Shown piece by piece: positions 16,349-64,000 of a stretch of 64,000 bases of DNA. The stretch is from Phallusia mammillata. Taxonomy: Eukaryota. Below the pieces are notes generated by a model that worked only from the letters and a program-made list of their open reading frames with translations, was not told where the DNA came from and did not search any database. Both the position numbers and the translations under genes were made by a program. The stretch covers positions 17,298,001 through 17,362,000 of the forward strand of contig OZ281497.1 in assembly GCA_965637545.1 (NCBI GenBank), written 5' to 3'. Positions within the stretch are counted from its first letter, which is position 1. The number at the start of each line of letters is the position of its first letter.

Positions 16349-19071
16349 GCTGGTTCGATCATGAAGGGTTTGTTGTTACTGGTAACTCGACCATACCAAC
16401 CCTGTTTTCGTGAAAACTGCCAAACCCTTGAAACATTTTTTTGAAGCTGTGGCCTAATTAACTTTCCACAATTGCATTTTTTTAACCTTTGTAGTTTAAA
16501 GAACTTTTGTCGAACTTGAGGTGTTTTTAGGTGAGGTTTTCATAAAAGCATGAACTTCTCATTCTATAGCTTACTACATAACTTGTTTCTAATTTGTTGT
16601 AATTTACAACCGTAACAGGAAGCAAACAAAAGCTCAACCCAGAAAACTAACAATACTTGTAGCACCAACTGCTAAGTCAGTTAATGTTATACCTAACTAA
16701 GTATCTCCATAATTTGATACACCATTATATTAGGCATTTTAGTTGTAAAGCCAAAAACAAGCGCTTAGTTCACATTCTTTCTATTTTATTTTTGATGTGA
16801 TATTTTACAATTTTTGAACTCCCGACCAGTTTCTAAACTTTGTGAAACAGTTCATATTTGGACGACAAGTTATAAGGGCAAAACATTTTAATGCTAACGT
16901 TTCTTCAGTGACAAAGATTAGTGGGAGCAAAATGGATGAACAATAATCATACATGTAGGGCCTACCTACATTGTAGGCTATTATAACTTAGTGTAGAGTG
17001 AACTAATATATCGTATGTTAATCGTAAGTACAACAGTCTGTTTATATATATATATATTATGTATTTATATGTACAGTCCAATAGTTTTGTGTTTATGCGT
17101 ATGTCCATAAAATCAGCAGAACAATTGCCGAAAGACAGTGCCAATAATTTAATTGAACTGATTTGCCTGCACGCGAATTGGTCCAGTTTGTCATGTCTGA
17201 AGATAAAACAGTAATATAAGCTATATGTTAATATAAGCTACGCATTTCGTATCGCGCAAGCGGAAAGTTTAGTACTGATTTTTGCACCTACATGTTACTT
17301 ATACAGAAATAACAACTGAGTTGTGCTTGAGGTACGACTTCATGTTGCGCACATCATTCAACTTTACAAGTGTTTGATAACCACTTCCAATATTTAACAC
17401 ATTATGGACACTTGCCTGTAACTTGCACAGAAATAATGACTGCATTGTGCTTGACGTATGACCTGAGGTGACGCACGTCATCCAACTTCACGAATGTGCG
17501 ATAGCCCAAACCAGTATTTACACTCTACAAACGTAGAACATAGGTCTACATGTTTTGTTTATTCGAAATATTTACATTTACTGTATCTGGTCTTTTCCAA
17601 TATTCCGCCGAGTCTGTGAGAAAGTTTGCAATAACGTTACTTTGCTGCAGGACGTCGGCATTTTGATCAACGAGAGAAAGTTTGATGTATCGATTTTGAA
17701 ACGGCCACTCAAGCTGGTCATCATTTACTCCTCGAGCGATGTAAAAGTACACTGACATACAGATTGATTCAGACGACAGGCTCTTTCCTAGCGGGTAAAC
17801 CTGGAAAATTAACATACACCTTAGTTTGACGGACGATTCTTGCAGATGAATTGTTTTTGTACGTAAAGAGTCAAAAAAGGAACACTAGTGATTACCGACA
17901 CCCTAAAAGCGTATCCGTCGTCTGTGTACATTACAGGACTCAGGGTTGCATCTCCTCTGTGGAACACATTGAGAATTTTCAGAAAAACCGAGTGTAAAGA
18001 AACCAGTTTCACACGACCTGTCAATCACGTTGACGTCGTCGATCGCAACCGCGTCTAAAGATCCTTGAAATAATGCGTCACAGAACTTGTTATTTTGCGA
18101 TTTGTCATTAAAGTTTTGAAACATGTAACGATTTATTGCAACCAATGCTGAACCCTTAGATAGTCATCAGCACTTACGACGTTGGCGGAGAGTGTGTGGG
18201 CGATAAACCTAAAACTATACTATTCTTTTGTTTCAATGTTTACAGCATTAATGGAATACCGACGCAACGTCAACCGGAAAACTTAGACCTCTCTAAGCAT
18301 TTATACTGAAACTCGGCTATGAATGGCTAATGGTTATCCTAGCTAATGGTTATTTACCTGACGAGGAATGGGATGAAATGATTTTGCTATCAGATTGACA
18401 TTTTAATTAAGATTGAAGTTAACTATAAAGTTTTTTTTGTGTGTATTTTTCAAAGAAAAATTTAGTATGTACTTGTGACAAACCAACCTGCTGTAGCTGC
18501 AAATTGGAGATAAAACTCAGATGGAGCTGACATCGTCACTCGAGCTTTCCTCCACATTCGTCCTTGGTCTCCATCAATTTCGAATATTTTGTTACCCATC
18601 ATATTTGATGATGGTGACACTGACACCAGTGTAACACTAAAATAAATTTTGTTGTAGAGTTTTTTAATAGCATTTAACGTGAAGTGAATTGAAATTACTT
18701 TGCTGAAATATTGTAGATAGGAAATGTTTACCAGATAAACAAAATCAGTTTTACCTTAAACTTATTGATGTACTTGTCGAGTGCAAGAAGTAGGAGAACT
18801 CAAGACACTGTTTGCTGACAGTGGACTTCAGTAGAGGGGTTCGCACAAACATGGATGAGGGCGAATAAGTTGGCGAGATGGCAACCAAAATGTTTCCTAT
18901 AAAGTTAAAATGTTTTAAATTATGTCAATTGTTGTCGCCCGGTCATTACTTTTTCTGTCAGTTATGAAAACGTTTCAACATTTAAAAGATATTGCGGGGA
19001 GTAAAGAACCTTGGCGAAGGGTATTTGGCTCTATAAATTCACTACTGTGATCAGATCTGAAGCGTCTATGC

Positions 19072-56453: not shown

Positions 56454-56693
56454 ATGCTTAGCGCGTGGGCAGTATTTGCTATCGTCACCATTTTCTGGTT
56501 GGTAGTTGGTGCACTTGGACCTTGGTTAGTGCCAAAAGGTTACTACAAAGGTGTTTACCAGACAATGATTATCACTACAGCAGTATGTTGCTGGCTGCAC
56601 TGGTTTCTCACCTACATGTCTCAGTTGAATCCTTTGATTGGACCAAATCTTTCAAATGGAATGGTATACATGATGATGTGGGTGTGGGACTGA
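56454..56693 (+). CDS. ATP6V0E: V-type proton ATPase V0 subunit e (single coding exon)
   Basis: 79 aa, two hydrophobic helices, motifs FW..VG..GPW.VPKG, TAVCCWL.W...Y.SQLNPLIGP. Acceptor at 56438-56439 just upstream of the ATG; candidate 5'UTR donor GAG|GTAAGT at 55974/55975. Confidence 0.92.
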   Translation: MLSAWAVFAIVTIFWLVVGALGPWLVPKGYYKGVYQTMIITTAVCCWLHWFLTYMSQLNPLIGPNLSNGMVYMMMWVWD

Positions 56694-57892
56694 AACTGTC
56701 ATAAACATTTTAGATGTGCAATATTCCTTGTTGTATGGCTAGTTTTGCCAATTTATGTTTATTTAACACAACTATAATTTAGTTGTGTAACACATTTCTT
56801 TCTTCTCTTTGTATGTTGTTATTTTATGTCTTGAATTTGTTTGTAACTCTTCTGCAACTTTGTTTTGCTGGCTTGTAACCTCTTAAAGCACTACTCTGAA
56901 ATGTATTGCAACAAGCCTCAAAAAAGCATATCCAAATACAAACAACTGGACAGTTAAGAATCAAACTGTGGCAGTGATGAAAATAGTTGTCTGAGGTTTA
57001 TTTTTTCACATTAAAATGTATGTAAGACATTATTGTATTGGTGAACAGTCAGAAAAATTAATGCAGAAAAAGCAATTTTGCACATATGCATTTAAGTTGA
57101 ACAAACCTTGTTTAAAAAATGGTTTTAAAATTAAACTGAATGTACACAGCGCAAATACTTGTGAAGGCTCATTATTGCATTAAAAAGTATTTAAGAATAT
57201 ATCAGCCAGTCTGCCACCAACTGGAGTCTTTTTTGTTTTTATGGGTGTTGTCATAAAAGGATTAAAAAGCATGTGACAGAAAATGGACATTGTTTGCAAG
57301 TAGTTATTGAGCTAAAAATGTAGACTACATACAGGCCTTTTTTAAGCTGAAATTGTGAACTGGTGTTTGCAGCTACACAGAATGTCCAAAATGGTGTTTT
57401 AAAGGGCCTGGCGTACTATGATTTAATCAGTTTTATTTCTTGAGACAAACTATTAGTATGAAACTTTACTGCAAAATTTATGCTGCCTTGTAGAACAAAT
57501 AAACTGCAGTCGGCTGGTAATTTCCTAGCATTGCATATAAAAGCACACATTTGGAATCAAGGATGTGTTTACTGTATTATTATCATTTTGAAAAAAAAAA
57601 CAATGCAAAAGATCAAAGAACATAATTTCACAAAGTGCACTGGGACACAATCACACTTGAATGGTTGAAGACTGCAGACAGTATTGTTTCAATATACATG
57701 TGTTACTGCAAAATTTTGATTAGTGACACTGATAAAGTTAGGTTGGCCATTATAATAGATTCATTTACAGTGTGAAAAATCCAATGTTGCTGCAAAATTA
57801 GTAAAATTCCATGTCATACTTCTGACTTAATCACAATGAATTTTGAAAAACAAAATGGTGGATAGATGAATGATACAACGTATGCTGGAAAT

Positions 57893-59999
57893 CTATTTCA
57901 ATTGGGGTCGGCCAGCAACAACAGAGTCCTCAATACCACACTCATTGACGCCCCGCTTGATCTTGAAGAAACCCTCTGCTCCCCAATCACTGTTCCAGCT
58001 ATTGGCAACCAACCAATATGGTGTACCTTCCTCTGTTCCCCAACCAATTATCTTAATTGCATGGCCACCAAGTACACCTCCAGTGACATGTTGATAAACA
58101 CCTAAAATATTTGAGCATTATTTCACAGAAATGTACTTTGTCGGTAGATTGTTCACAAACGCAACCCAACAAGGACTTTAGAGAAGTTCAACCAAACTTG
58201 ATTGACCCAAAAAGAGAGTGTTAATCCTGTTTAATAGTTAACCCAAATGGTTAATCTGACTAAAAAGCTGTTAAACAATTTAACCCAAACGCAAGCCACA
58301 CACTCACCACTCTTGTAAGTCGGGAAATCTGCATAAACAGTGAAAGCAGCCTCGACAGGCCCATGCTTCTGTATTTCAGCTTGTATTTGTGACACATCAG
58401 AGCTAATTTCATATGAGTCTGCACCAAAGTGGAGATCTTTTTTGTAGTTCTCAGTAGTATTGCCCATACATGCTCTTTCACACTTTGGAGTGGATCCACC
58501 TTCACTACATTTTGGTCGTTTACCTAAAAGTAAAAATCGTTTTTTTGAAAAATTATCAACCTTTTCAACTGTTTTGAATGAAAAAGTAACAAATTTTATT
58601 ACATCGTTAGGCAAAAACAAATGTTTGTTGCTCAGAGTGGGACAAATCACAGCATTTCACCTATTGTTAGGTAATGAGCATAACAAAAGATCAGCTACAG
58701 AGTAAACTGTTTGTGTCATGTGACATGTTAGCAATTGATTAACAAACTAAGCTGCTGGCACTGAACAAATGAGAAATAGGTCCCTAAGCATTCAATTGCC
58801 TAGTAATGGCTGTTGGCCAACTTTTCTAGGAAGTTGGTGCAGGAAATGCTTTGTCACGAGATTTAACTTCACGTGACACTGATGTTTGCTAATTTATCTT
58901 GCTGAGTTACCTATTTTTGTGTGGCATCTAATGCAGTATAGTTATACGTTTCCTTTTTATAACAAACATTCCTCATAACTACCTTCAACATGATGCTCGC
59001 ATGGTGGAATAGAGTAGGGTTGGCAATATTGGTCATTACCATATAAGAAACCGGTGACTAGCCCCTCATTAACCCAATGCCTCCAGGCACCAGCTGGGTA
59101 TCCACCATTACATCTACAAGGACGCAGTTTTCTTATTATTTAAACATGCAATACATTCTAGAGACACATATGAACTAATTAAGGTTTTGTAATCTAGTTT
59201 AGGTTATATGTAAAAAAAGTCGAATTAATTTGCAATTGTGTCATTAAAGGCACAAACAGGCTGCAACATTTACCCATCTCCACATGTGATACCACAGCAG
59301 GTCAGCATATCTTGTGCAGAAATTTCAGTTTTGATGGCGCCTTTACTGAAAATGCACAGCCTATCAGACATTGCTTCCACTGCACCAAATGCCCAACATG
59401 AACCACATGATCCCTGAAAATACACATTTAGTCATCAAAATTATATATGTTTGTATGCAAAATTATGCAATACCCATTTCAATGTTCTATTTATGACACA
59501 CATCCATTTTGAATAAAAGAGTAATATATTTACCTGGTCACGAACAGCCTTTATTGAAGGACAATTTGGCCAATTTGTTCTTGAATCAAATGTTTCAGGG
59601 AGATCTTTCTCATCAACTTCATGAAACCTGTGGTCCCCCAACAGAAGATTGATTAACAGCACATTCCATTAAAATAATTAAAACAATAAAACCTCACATT
59701 ACTGGAAGTACATATTTCAAATCAGTTTCCTGCTTCACACCACATAAAACTTTCAAGTCAGATGGAAGGTAGTTTTTAGGGTCAAAGTTGTGGGCAGCCT
59801 GTAACAAAATTTACATTTTTAAAAGACCAAAACAAAAATGCCTAATACAAAAAGATTCAAAAGTAAAACAAAAAAGTACCTTCCATGTTGTGTGAAGGGA
59901 ATTCACGGTGTTCACGATTTCGTAGAAGTTTTGTTCCTTTGTCACAACATAAGCTTGCGCTACGCACAAAACAGCCAACAAAAAACCCAAAACTTTCAT
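57893..59999 (-). CDS. CTSB: Cathepsin B, intact, 7 exons
   Basis: [13 protein letters not shown] (Gln23, Cys29), occluding loop [16 protein letters not shown] (His199), ANSWN (Asn219); signal and propeptide present. Confidence 0.95.
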
Positions 60000-60523
60000 A
60001 TTGAATAAAAAATAACAAAATCTAAATAAAATTTCTGAAACAGCACAGTTCAAATTAAGATTAAATTTAAGCAACATTCGTTGGCCACTACATTAACATT
60101 TGACAAACGAACGGTCGTCGCCATCAAAGCTCAACAACACGAACGCCTCGTTTCAGTCAACACGCTTTGTTGCAATTGTTGGTGTCTCGTGACTGAGCAA
60201 TTAGGCTATGTCGTGCAAAATTGCAAATGGAAAAAAAGAAAATTGCGTCATACAGCAATAACAGCACTGCCTATTTGTCCAATTTTTACTGGATTGGATT
60301 ATCCCTTTTCCTTTACCAGCTGCTTTTATAAGTGCCTCAGCATTTCAAGACTTTTATATGTTTCCAGTTATGATTTTTTAGAATCAAGTTCGATTTTGCT
60401 TGACAGACTCACCTTTGTTTTCGGGCAGTGACGTATTAGGTTCAAACTTGTTTGGTGTATTCTAATACTACCACGCTAAAACATAAGAAAACTGGCTTTG
60501 GGAACTCCGCCAGCACCCTATTT

Positions 60524-60672
60524 TCGTCTCTGTGCCCGCTGTATTATTCGCTCATTGCTCTGAAGAAGTCCTACCTTTCTGGTGGACGAAACGTCAGCAA
60601 AAATACAAGTTCTTGAAAACAACAACTGGTATTTTGTTTAGAATTACACCAGTTGAACGAAATAATTTATTA
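60524..60672 (+). mobile_element. 149-bp hammerhead-bearing Penelope-like mini-insertion
   Basis: 12-bp direct repeat AGCACCCTATTT at 60512-60523 and 60673-60684 flanking a hammerhead core and a 3' hairpin CAACTGGT..ACCAGTTG. Confidence 0.75.
60555..60600 (+). ncRNA. Minimal type I hammerhead ribozyme
   Basis: Stem I TTGCT/AGCAA; core CTGAAGA-A; stem II GTCC(T)ACC-TTTCT-GGT-GGAC; GAAA; palindromic ACGT stem III; GTC cleavage triplet ending at 60595. Confidence 0.8.
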
Positions 60673-61061
60673 AGCACCCTATTTGTTGCACATTAAGAAA
60701 AAACAATGATCTCAATTTTTGTTTTGTTGGTTTTAGATCACCATGCAAACGCTTGACGATCGAATAAATGTGCACATAGGCGCCGAGTGGACGGTGGCGG
60801 GGTGGCGCGGCCACCTTGGGTTTGTAAAGCACGGTGGCGGCCACCGTGGATATTTTGAATTGTTTGTAGCGGTATCGTACAAAACATCGTAAAATTTGGA
60901 ACAATTTTGCTTTTAAACAAGCGTACTGGTAAAAAAGCAACAAAATGTGCCGAAACTGCAACCTGTTTTGGTTAGTGTCTTGTTTATAACGTCAAACACA
61001 CAATTGTTGACATTAAATGTGTGGCCATTATTGTGTACAATGCGATTGTACTGTAATAAAC

Positions 61062-61254
61062 GGTAGAGCTACTAACACTGAGCTTCACCTTTGGCCCGAC
61101 CTGGGAACTTCTGGTAGGTGGCGCAAAAGAGCATAGGCGTTTATGGTGCTGACTCAGCAATTATTCTTACCATAAACGCCTATGCTCTTTTGCGCCACCT
61201 ACCAGAAGTTCCCAGGTCGAGCCAAAGGTGAAGCTCAGTGTTAGTAGCTCTACC
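61062..61254. mobile_element. Near-perfect foldback Mutator-like MITE
   Basis: 86-bp arms with 1 mismatch, 21-bp loop, perfect 9-bp TSD GTAATAAAC. Confidence 0.92.
61147..61159. promoter_or_regulatory. Perfect T-MARE/ARE motif TGCTGACTCAGCA
   Basis: Exact 13-bp Maf recognition consensus in the MITE loop, ~1.15 kb upstream of the CTSB ATG. Function untested. Confidence 0.4.
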
Positions 61255-61637
61255 GTAATAAACAGGTATTTTGGTGATACGAGAGCAACTATTAGACGAA
61301 ACGTTTCCTTAACGTTGCTAAACCAATAATAACGTTAAAGCAAAGTGTTTTAAATGAACATTATTTCAAATATTTTGACGAACGTCGCATTTTTTAGTTG
61401 GAGCTCGATCGTGCGGTTGTTCGCTTTGGTGACGTCATAATTTACGTCCGCCACCTTGCATTTTTGTACAATTCGGCGCCTATGGATGTGCACATAATTT
61501 ACGTAGGAATACAAAAGCAATAAAACAACAATCAAACTTTTGCAAACGTGGTTTAACAATATCACATTTGTGGCGATTAGGCTTAAGGCAACTTTAAAAC
61601 AAAATATGATTTGGCCATTCAATTCAAGAGAAGCATT

Positions 61638-63834
61638 TTAGTCAGATCTTGCGCGTCCAGCAACCACCATTTCTTCAATTCCACACATATTTACTCCTCG
61701 TCGGATTTTGAATGTCCCTTTCGCTCCCCAATGTTTCCCCCATGTGTTCACAGCTAACCAGTATGGCAAACTATTTTCCTCACCCCAACCGATGATTCTG
61801 ACCGATTGTCCACCGACCTCGTCTCCAGCTAAGTGTTGATACACACCTACGAAAATATAATTTTGACTTTTTGTGGTTTAGCATATGAGTCGCAACCCAA
61901 ACTTAGGCTGCTCAAAAATTCTTTTGGGAAAACCGCTTTTGTCAGAAATGCACGTTTTAACTTCCTTTGGTAGCATTTTTTCTTATCCACGACTGACACC
62001 CTTGGCTGGGTAACAACAATTCCATAATAACTATAGAAGCTTTGTTTTTGTATGTGACGTAATAATTTAGTTGTTATAGCCTGCTGTGAAGTCTTGGCAA
62101 TTGTGACTCTTAATGCGTTAAATCCGCATTAAAGTTGGTATAAAATCAATCTACAAAATACAAATATGGGGGCATTAACATAGACGTCGCTGGGTGAACG
62201 AATCGATGTAAATTGTAATTGGACTGTATAGCTGTTTGGATCGCATACGCATACAGTATACACAGACCGACAAAGGCGATCTATATTACCTGACTTGTAA
62301 GTAAAGAAATCTTCATATACTGTAAAAGACGCTTGAACGGGTCCGTTTCGAATAATTTCGAGTTGGATCTGTTTGGGAACGCTGCTCACAGTGTAGGAAT
62401 TGACCCCATAATACTTCTGCTGATCGTAATCAAGCGATTTGTTACCAAGACATCTCGGCACGCATTTTGGCGTCGCAGGCGTGGTGGTGGTTTCTTTCTG
62501 CTTTCCTATACAAAATAACTGTGTAACATCTGTGAAATAAAAACGCTGTAACGTTTTTGTGTACAAACCAAACTATCGCTAAGTTGTAACGCAATTGAGT
62601 GATGTCCGATAACGAAAAATATGGAAACAAAAAACAGTCAAACCGAACACCTCGATATACCTTTTCCCATCCGTTGCAGTGGTTTAAAACTGTATGGTTG
62701 GCAATATGTGATGTCACCATATCCCAATCCAGTAACAACTCCATTCCACTGAAAGTAGTCCCAGGCAGCCAACGGATATCCACCATCACACCTAAGTTTT
62801 TTAATTCGAATCTGTTTCTTCCATTTTAAGTCAAAAATAGGCAACTTAATACAAGTTTTCCTGTCTTTTACCCAAATCCACATCTCCAACCGCAGCAAGT
62901 AAGCAGATCTTGGGCTGATATATGCGTCACAATTCGAGCTTGACTGAAGATGCACAGACGATCCGACATCGTTTGAGCTGCTATGATAGCCCATGATGCT
63001 TTGCATTTTCCCTGATGCAAGAGGAAGTTTTCTTGAATAAATTAAAACGCTTTTATATTAAGAAATCTTATACCTGGTCCATGACGCTGTTTATTGATGG
63101 ACAGTATGGCCAGTGACCTCGAGCATCAAATTCGGTTGGAAGGATAGTACGCAACTGCGGATCGTGGTATCTTAATTACAAATGATTTATTCGTTATATA
63201 TTTTAAAAAGTCCGTTTCTGATGTTTGTCGCGGATTTCAGTCGCAGTTGTAACCATTTTGTTTATAGCATTCGAAGTTGTAACTGGGAAAATCATACTTG
63301 TCGGTAAAACTTAACATTCTCTTTAAAAAGGCAGATTTTGAAAGATTAAAGGTTACGAAAAGTTTTTTGGGGTGCCTTTTTTCATTGATGCTCTAAGTAC
63401 GTGCTTACATTGCCTGGTGGTTTATCACTGCGCATTTTGGTATTGGCCAAAAACAATCTTACATGGTGGGGATAATTTTTCCTCCAGTCCACCGTTCACT
63501 TCTAACACCACTCAGATTTTTCAAATCTTCAAGACTGTAAAGATGCGGGTTGAAGTTGAATCCGGCCTAAAACACAACATTTATTTTTTGCCAACGTTAA
63601 AAGAGTCCATAAATGCTGGTATATTTGGTAAAATCGTTAATTACCTTTATAATAATCACATGGTTGTAGCAATGTCATACGCTTAATGTAAAGCTTATGT
63701 CGTACCTTCCAAGTGGACTGTCGCTTATTCACCAAGTTAATGAGTTGAAGTTGGTCGCCAACCACCAACAAAACAATTTCTGACATAACAGTGAAGAGTA
63801 CTGCAACATATTTACATCTTTCCATCTTATACAA
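61638..63834 (-). CDS. Cathepsin B-like pseudo-protease (intact ORF, catalytic residues replaced), 7 exons
   Basis: Same exon phases as the neighbouring CTSB; MDQGKCKASWAI (Cys29 to Ser), GGQSVRII (His199 to Gln), occluding loop PLQRMGKGKQKETTT. Start at 63834 or 63825. Confidence 0.88.
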
Positions 63835-64000
63835 AATTAGACTGCAAATTTATGGCCTGTTATTGATTAATATTGCAGGCAAGACATAAATAAAAACTAC
63901 ACAGTAAAATCTGGTTGCCTAACCTAAACAGTCTGATTCGCTGATATAAATGCTGCACCCTCAGGCCATTATCGAATCACGCAGGAATAAAACCAAATCC

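Follow-up and report, generated by a model that had tools for sequence, protein, structure and literature searches.

A cathepsin B (CTSB) homolog that should be catalytically inactive lies beside an active CTSB gene in the ascidian Phallusia mammillata, within a stretch of 64,000 nucleotides (contig OZ281497.1 of assembly GCA_965637545.1, positions 17,298,001 to 17,362,000; we call this whole stretch the window, give all positions in its coordinates, and note that it contains no N). The inactive copy is encoded on the minus strand (63825-61638) by seven exons specifying 338 amino acids (aa), and the active gene follows 1.6 kb downstream on the same strand, where it was located by tblastn of the inactive protein against the window. 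The origin of the inactive copy, the loss of its catalytic apparatus and the continued constraint on its fold can all be documented at the level of the sequence. On balance we favor reading it as a lineage-specific pseudo-protease in which catalysis was lost while the secretory features and the papain fold were preserved, and which probably acts as a cleft-binding decoy.

Structure of the inactive gene

The gene model comprises the following features.

61638-63825, minus strand: whole inactive cathepsin B-like gene (GT-AG at six introns, open frame, Peptidase_C1 and Propeptide_C1 domains)
63706-63825, minus strand: exon 1, 120 nt, with the start codon, hydrophobic N-terminus and start of the propeptide (gene model and hydropathy)
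63463-63566, minus strand: exon 2, 104 nt, propeptide (gene model)
63074-63170, minus strand: exon 3, 97 nt, end of the propeptide and start of the mature domain (LPTEFD...DQ), Gln23 kept
62872-63011, minus strand: exon 4, 140 nt, former active-site motif GKCKASW, with Ser29 (TCA, 62996-62994)
62661-62791, minus strand: exon 5, 131 nt, first half of the former occluding loop, KPLQRMGKG, with Cys108Leu, His110Arg and His111Met
62290-62505, minus strand: exon 6, 216 nt, second half of the loop, KQKETTTTPATPKC, with Arg116Gln, Cys119Thr, a Thr/Pro-rich stretch and the sequon at Asn135
61638-61846, minus strand: exon 7, 209 nt, with Gln199 (CAA, 61808-61806), Ala200Ser, Asn219 kept, Ser220Thr, Asn222Gly, Asp224His and the stop codon

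The open reading frame (ORF) of 1017 nt has no internal stop and all six introns are GT..AG; it begins at the ATG at 63825, 27 nt downstream of an in-frame TAA, and ends at the TAA at 61640-61638. A preliminary description of this DNA had proposed a seven-exon ORF with a propeptide, and the spliced model agrees, being open, with GT-AG introns and with Propeptide_C1 above its cut-off; the end coordinate given there, 63834, has to be corrected, marking only the TTG of a mechanical ORF. Pfam assigns Peptidase_C1 (PF00112, 1.8e-50, residues 85-332) and the cathepsin B-type Propeptide_C1 (PF08127, 35.3 bits against a cut-off of 32.7) and finds no domain beyond these two in the protein, including any adhesive, EGF-type or somatomedin-B (SMB)-type module. 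The N-terminus is hydrophobic and signal-peptide-like, as judged by hydropathy only (mean of 2.0-2.4 over residues 7-23).

The exon structure closely follows that of the active gene (120/104/97/140/131/216/209 nt in the inactive copy and 120/101/94/140/131/216/209 nt in the active one). Exons 1 and 4-7 are thus identical in size, exon 1 also corresponds in start position, and both mature domains comprise 254 aa, all of which speaks for an origin by duplication.

Loss of the catalytic apparatus

Residues are counted from Leu1 of the LPxxFD motif, which we take to be the usual mature cathepsin B numbering. The count agrees with that of a study of fluke paralogs (PMC7054455). Around the nucleophile, GSCGSCW has become GKCKASW (Arg21Met, Ser25Lys, Gly27Lys, Ser28Ala and Cys29Ser); the catalytic histidine and the residue after it are replaced (His199Gln, Ala200Ser), as are three residues next to Asn219 (Ser220Thr, Asn222Gly and Asp224His) and five in the occluding loop (Cys108Leu, His110Arg, His111Met, Arg116Gln and Cys119Thr). 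The loop segment, 13 residues that are not shown here, has changed to PLQRMGKGKQKET, and the former loop as a whole reads KPLQRMGKGKQKETTTTPATPKC. The insertion that forms the loop is nevertheless still present, exons 5 and 6 having the same length as in the active gene.

Asp22, Gln23, Asn219 and Trp221 are retained. So are 10 of the 12 disulfide cysteines, which leaves five of the six CTSB disulfides (pairs presumed from the human enzyme) with both partners; the two cysteines of the sixth, the loop disulfide 108/119, were lost together, and no new unpaired cysteine is present. Where it named residues, the preliminary description had been accurate: its codons for Ser29 (TCA 62996-62994) and Gln199 (CAA 61808-61806) are exact, as is Gly27Lys, and the four loop losses (His110, His111, Cys108 and Cys119) and the retention of Gln23, Asn219 and the other structural cysteines are found as it gave them. 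To these the present analysis adds Arg21Met, Arg116Gln, Ala200Ser, Ser220Thr, Asn222Gly and Asp224His. Both salt bridges that anchor the occluding loop, His110-Asp22 and Arg116-Asp224, are broken; in the enzyme, His110 and His111 also serve the dipeptidyl carboxypeptidase action (PMC7054455 and papers cited there).

These changes lie far outside normal variation, because among the 120 best database relatives Cys29 and His199 are each present in 119, and Cys108 and Cys119 in all 120. The catalytic set of the active peptidase (EC 3.4.22.1) is incomplete, with Ser29 and Gln199, although Asn219 and Gln23 are kept, and the positions that anchor the loop are occupied by Arg110, Met111, Gln116 and His224. 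By homology the protein should be placed in the cathepsin B subfamily (C1A) as a non-peptidase homolog. Given how papain-like enzymes are established to work, the protein should be inactive, because there is no Cys29/His199 thiolate-imidazolium pair, Ser29 is without a general base, and Lys25 and Lys27 crowd the site.

The mature domain has also gone from acidic to basic (isoelectric point [pI] of 8.6, against 5.5 in the active neighbor), and the Lys-rich remnant of the loop is followed by TTTTPATP; the N-glycosylation sequon at Asn135 is conserved. Because the hydrophobic N-terminus, the propeptide, this sequon and five disulfides are kept, the protein should fold in the secretory pathway as procathepsin B does.

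Selective constraint on the fold

We aligned the mature domain with 219 CTSBs and defined as invariant those columns that are at least 95% conserved (n = 80). The inactive copy keeps 68 of these 80 conserved columns, as compared with 16 of 68 variable columns at which it matches its neighbor (Fisher p 3e-14). The losses are concentrated: 11 of the 21 conserved columns inside the catalytic and occluding-loop segments are replaced (10 retained), against one of the 59 outside them (58 retained; p 3.5e-7, for four segments, around 29, 199, 219 and the occluding loop, that were taken from established enzyme knowledge and chosen after the list of losses had been seen). Fold invariants were thus kept almost without exception over the period in which about half of those in the catalytic and loop segments changed, which is not the pattern of a copy that has been neutral since it lost catalysis.

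The integrity of the frame points the same way. In neutral simulations of the neighbor's coding sequence, which ignored indels, copies brought to 50% identity carried 11 stops on average and none of 3000 frames stayed open, and at 90% identity only 9% of frames were open. All 24 splice dinucleotide bases are intact, for which the expected probability at the divergence of the inactive copy is about 4e-4. The paired loss of the loop cysteines and the retained sequon at Asn135 likewise speak for constraint.

We also fitted a codon branch model (our own implementation, on six ascidian sequences), in which a ratio of nonsynonymous to synonymous rates (dN/dS, or omega) of 1 on the inactive branch was rejected (twice the log-likelihood difference, 2dlnL, 14.45). 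Nonsynonymous changes per codon amount to 0.91-0.98 on the inactive branch, against 0.26 on that of the neighbor. Pairwise comparison of the inactive with the active copy gave a dN of 0.51 and a dS of about 1.7 to 5 (including our own correction at 4-fold sites), which would put omega on the inactive branch at roughly 0.15-0.5, with dS saturated. With saturation at synonymous sites and branch lengths driven to their bounds, point estimates of omega are unreliable; we discarded those from both the pairwise comparison and the branch model, and relied on two results alone, that omega = 1 is rejected and that the branches differ in nonsynonymous length.

Judged from these comparisons, the inactive copy has evolved much faster than its neighbor, yet not neutrally, and its fold is under purifying selection. 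The proposal in the preliminary description that the protein has been kept is therefore borne out by its conserved fold residues, by its intact ORF and splice sites, and by an omega below 1 (dS being saturated).

Origin by tandem duplication

The inactive protein is about 48-50% identical to its active neighbor, and a full-length search of 5.8 billion clustered proteins returned nothing closer than 47% identity. In a tree from which other long rows were left out, the inactive copy is sister to the adjoining CTSB (support 98/92, starred) inside the ascidian CTSB clade, with 2.52 substitutions per site since the split, against 0.17 for the neighbor. When other divergent or dead CTSB-like rows were joined (from a moth, a beetle, nematodes and a fluke, and from a protist-like contig that bears telomere-like repeats), all long rows gathered at the base of the tree and raised a long-branch flag; with these divergent rows included, the approximately unbiased (AU) test did not reject the clade of inactive copy plus neighbor (delta lnL 2.1, p 0.41). 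The tree then joins the inactive copy to other dead CTSB-like proteins, but in view of the flag for long-branch attraction and of the AU test we do not accept this grouping as evidence for an old dead clade. Private residues, counted per row, recur chiefly in ascidian CTSBs and above all in the neighbor (12 of 56, a modest signal); a comparison of shared rare residues (those found in no more than 5% of rows) showed nothing clear.

Independent support comes from the locus of Clavelina lepadiformis, in which CTSB, V-ATPase subunit e, MAGE and claudin genes occur in the same order as in the window. The corresponding features in the window are the following.

57893-59999, minus strand: active cathepsin B, seven exons, 336 aa, with the full catalytic set and occluding loop (tblastn, RNA contigs)
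59999-59880, 59798-59698, 59627-59534, 59413-59274, 59113-58983, 58523-58308 and 58101-57893, minus strand: exons 1 to 7 of active CTSB
56454-56690, plus strand: V-ATPase subunit e, single-exon ORF of 79 aa (Pfam ATP_synt_H, 7.6e-25)
about 45302-43864, minus strand: MAGE-domain exons
about 43044-41327, minus strand: claudin-like exons

No second CTSB-like exon was found within 10 kb upstream of CTSB in Clavelina, and in Styela clava a single CTSB copy is present within 10 kb on either side. Because a second CTSB is absent from the Clavelina locus and from beside the Styela gene, the duplication is special to the Phallusia side, and the sequence evidence indicates that the inactive copy is a tandem CTSB duplicate that arose on this side of the ascidians. 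Its independent evolution, as the preliminary description had put it, is upheld by its place as sister to the adjoining CTSB and by its absence from the syntenic Clavelina locus. The duplication is old, since the introns of the two copies no longer align (no similarity was found outside exons) and only 25 of 72 4-fold sites are identical.

Downstream of CTSB, MAGE and claudin match Clavelina in both order and orientation, a microsynteny that spans two ascidian orders. The Clavelina counterpart of V-ATPase subunit e is a 65% identical stretch downstream of CTSB (about 18644-18880) in which no gene has been called; with respect to CTSB, it has opposite orientations in the two species.

Expression and the possibility of a silenced gene

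RNA evidence consisted of contigs from four runs of four studies carrying the same species label, examined over 57890-63880 (5991 letters). Each run yielded one spliced contig over active CTSB with exactly the modeled junctions (word depth 168-327), and we conclude from this splicing that the sampled runs are truly RNA. The runs are small (16-34 million letters each), and we suspect, given the usual use of this species, that they represent eggs, embryos or single cells.

Several results weigh against a maintained, cleft-binding protein. No RNA contig was seen over 61490-63880 in four small runs that assemble the neighbor fully; the 5.8 billion clustered proteins, which include transcriptome assemblies, hold no identical or close protein; and no AATAAA-type hexamer occurs within 600 nt after the stop codon. 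The missing proteins and the missing hexamer agree with low or restricted expression. Saturated synonymous sites hide any recent switch to neutrality, and no ortholog of the inactive gene was found (a search for orthologs with the exon-6 peptide gave no candidates, the exon-7 peptide matched nothing above 70% identity among 1.84 billion representatives, and a look-alike search with exon 7 returned the generic papain family only). The cleft-binding role, finally, is purely our inference.

The main nonfunctional rival is that the gene was long maintained and is now silent, a pseudogene that is either very young or no longer transcribed and in which the frame is still unbroken. The lack of RNA contigs in runs that cover the neighbor, of a matching protein in any collection searched and of a canonical poly(A) hexamer would all be expected of such a relic, and the great length of its branch relative to the neighbor's fits as well. 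We nevertheless consider it unlikely: the frame, the start codon and the splice sites of six introns are intact, neutral copies are mostly closed even at 90% identity, and the losses are confined almost entirely to the catalytic and loop segments. Because neutral frames close fast in simulation, any neutral phase must have been short relative to the time in which the catalytic and loop residues were replaced. The sampled RNA runs were also small and probably drawn from early stages.

Proposed role of the inactive protein

We propose the following sequence of events for a cleft-binding pseudo-protease. After tandem duplication, the second copy lost the Cys29/His199 pair with its surrounding residues and, from the occluding loop, the two histidines, the disulfide and both of the salt bridges that anchor it. 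The protein may enter the secretory or lysosomal route in a zymogen-like form; its propeptide would not be self-removed and would have to be trimmed by another protease, for example the neighboring CTSB. The trimmed form would then present an open, non-cleaving cleft beneath a loosened, basic, Thr/Pro-rich loop, and this cleft could hold ligands without turnover, of which cystatin-type inhibitors or peptide substrates seem likeliest. In so doing the protein would buffer the supply of inhibitor or substrate for active cathepsins, and the loop, no longer anchored, could serve as an extra arm that binds or is glycosylated. Comparable steps are described for TrCB1.6 of Trichobilharzia, which is trimmed in trans, either by legumain or by its active sisters; cystatin was bound by the trimmed form alone, and the study discusses loosening of the loop as a cause of higher affinity for cystatin (PMC7054455). 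A more specific version, which we offer tentatively, is a tunicate pseudo-protease expressed only in adult tissues, whose loop has changed from a closed lid with histidines to a free, basic, probably O-glycosylated arm, and which soaks up cystatins or substrates or else binds to tunic or matrix.

The main functional rival is a selected non-enzyme whose role does not depend on the cleft, such as binding to matrix, tunic or glycans, which would resemble TINAG/TINAGL1 in function while being unrelated to them. It would account for the reversal of charge in the mature domain, for the retained sequon, and for the Lys-rich remnant with TTTTPATP, a plausible patch for mucin-type O-glycosylation; TINAGL1, moreover, is matricellular and its CTSB-like domain is inactive (PMC5361709). 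The same features also fit the cleft-binding decoy, however, the protein has no adhesive or EGF/SMB-type module, and nothing locates it, and we regard this rival as quite improbable.

A hydrolase still active through Ser29 is highly improbable, since Gln has replaced the general base, His199, next to Ala200Ser, Lys25 and Lys27 lie beside the nucleophile position, the serine nucleophile of silicatein or SERA proteins goes together with a catalytic His that is Gln here, and the known active serine variants of papain-like enzymes keep the histidine. In its favor, Gln23 and Asn219 are kept, and Cys-to-Ser papain-like variants can retain activity (PMC7054455).

The active neighbor and the intergenic spacer

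The tandem active CTSB reported in the preliminary description lies on the same strand (59999-57893), and its splicing is matched exactly by the RNA contigs of all four runs. The UniProt entry A0A6F9DB06 (Phallusia mammillata cathepsin B) is 100% identical to the active protein over 78% of the query; it is partial (263 aa), whereas the preproenzyme of 336 aa is complete in both the genomic model and the RNA contigs. The next-best matches are ascidian CTSBs, from Clavelina (68% identity), Ciona savignyi (63%) and Styela (59%), and together these matches mark the window as ascidian DNA. The donor of exon 2 is GTGAGG.

In two RNA runs the contigs of active CTSB carry 20 extra letters at the 5' end, joined at the AG at 60036-60035 and reading, in reverse complement and together with this AG, ATTCTATTTGAATAAG, which we take to be the ascidian spliced leader (SL). 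This AG (minus strand) lies 36 nt upstream of the ATG in an acceptor that reads TTTCAG, and the active CTSB mRNA appears to be SL trans-spliced there. In the inactive gene a TTTGCAG acceptor precedes the ATG by 16 nt, and from its resemblance to that of the neighbor we infer that it may be a trans-splice acceptor too. The spacer between the genes (60490-61489) is covered by many short RNA contigs of 90-95% identity, with loose ends and many variants, and looks like transcribed multicopy repeat elements. Rfam at its gathering threshold found no family anywhere in 57000-64000.

Significance

Dead CTSB paralogs are already known in flukes, bugs, nematodes and moths, and because such copies occur in several animal groups, the Phallusia copy, which is new and independently arisen, opens no new question. 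It is unusual in how complete the loss is, with both catalytic residues, the histidines and disulfide of the loop and both of its anchors gone, in how strongly the remaining fold has been retained, and in its host, a free-living chordate. If the gene is expressed, it provides a clean natural experiment, with parent and daughter genes side by side, in which the 58 of 59 kept invariants mark the parts of the CTSB fold that matter for a noncatalytic role, and it adds a free-living chordate to a phenomenon studied mostly in parasites. Should the reading as an adult-expressed tunicate sponge or binder hold, it would be a free-living parallel to decoys known mainly from parasites. In genome annotation the gene should not be labeled an active cathepsin B.

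Comparison with known inactive cathepsins

TINAG proteins carry N-terminal EGF/SMB-like modules (PMC5361709). TINAG and TINAGL1 resemble the Phallusia protein in being secreted and in having a CTSB-like domain without proteolytic activity, but they form an old, widely conserved family with N-terminal modules, whereas the Phallusia gene is a local ascidian CTSB duplicate. No N-terminal cysteine-rich modules of the TINAG type were found in the inactive gene (by Pfam, with 175 nt of the window upstream of its ATG). The preliminary description had seen no somatomedin-B-like region, and indeed a CTSB propeptide is present and Pfam detects no extra N-terminal domain, so the sequence supports the view that this is not a TINAG-type protein.

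The SMIPP-Cs of the scabies mite stem from group 1 allergen (cathepsin L-like) genes and form a multicopy family in a parasite, and in these respects they differ from the Phallusia CTSB copy. They resemble it as lineage-specific papain-fold proteins with mutated catalytic sites and are thought to act by binding (PMC5956821).

Closer in kind are other CTSB-like proteins. SbCAB4 of the assassin bug Sycanus has His199Leu and lacks both loop histidines (PMC12653315), and public data contain proteins without Cys29 and His199 from a Loxostege moth, Caenorhabditis remanei, C. bovis, Paragonimus and several further contigs. These share the architecture of the Phallusia copy; several lack the catalytic residues and both loop histidines, and two have the same Gln-Ser pair at 199-200. 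Near full length they are 34-43% identical to it, as compared with 48% for its neighbor (identity rises to 51-55% in two short fragments, over some 70 residues); they come from unrelated taxa, and they and the Phallusia copy are of independent origin. One of them, P0328 (Cys29Gly/His199Gln), lies on a contig (L005) that starts (1-21) with three telomere-like ATCCCCA repeats. Its gene (108-1160) has no introns and a second gene close behind, because of which it probably comes from a protist; P0328 is probably an independent dead cathepsin B outside animals.

The nearest studied parallels are TrCB1.5 and TrCB1.6, inactive cathepsin B1 paralogs of the schistosome Trichobilharzia regenti (PMC7054455). 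Like the Phallusia copy, they are CTSB paralogs with a signal peptide and propeptide and no added domain, in which Cys29 is replaced, loop His110 and Asp224 are changed, and self-activation does not occur. In the fluke proteins His199 and the disulfide of the loop are still present, divergence from the active sisters is small, expression is high and cystatin binding has been demonstrated, whereas the Phallusia copy, known from its sequence, is without both catalytic partners and the loop disulfide, has diverged far more (48% identity to its neighbor), and belongs to a free-living chordate.

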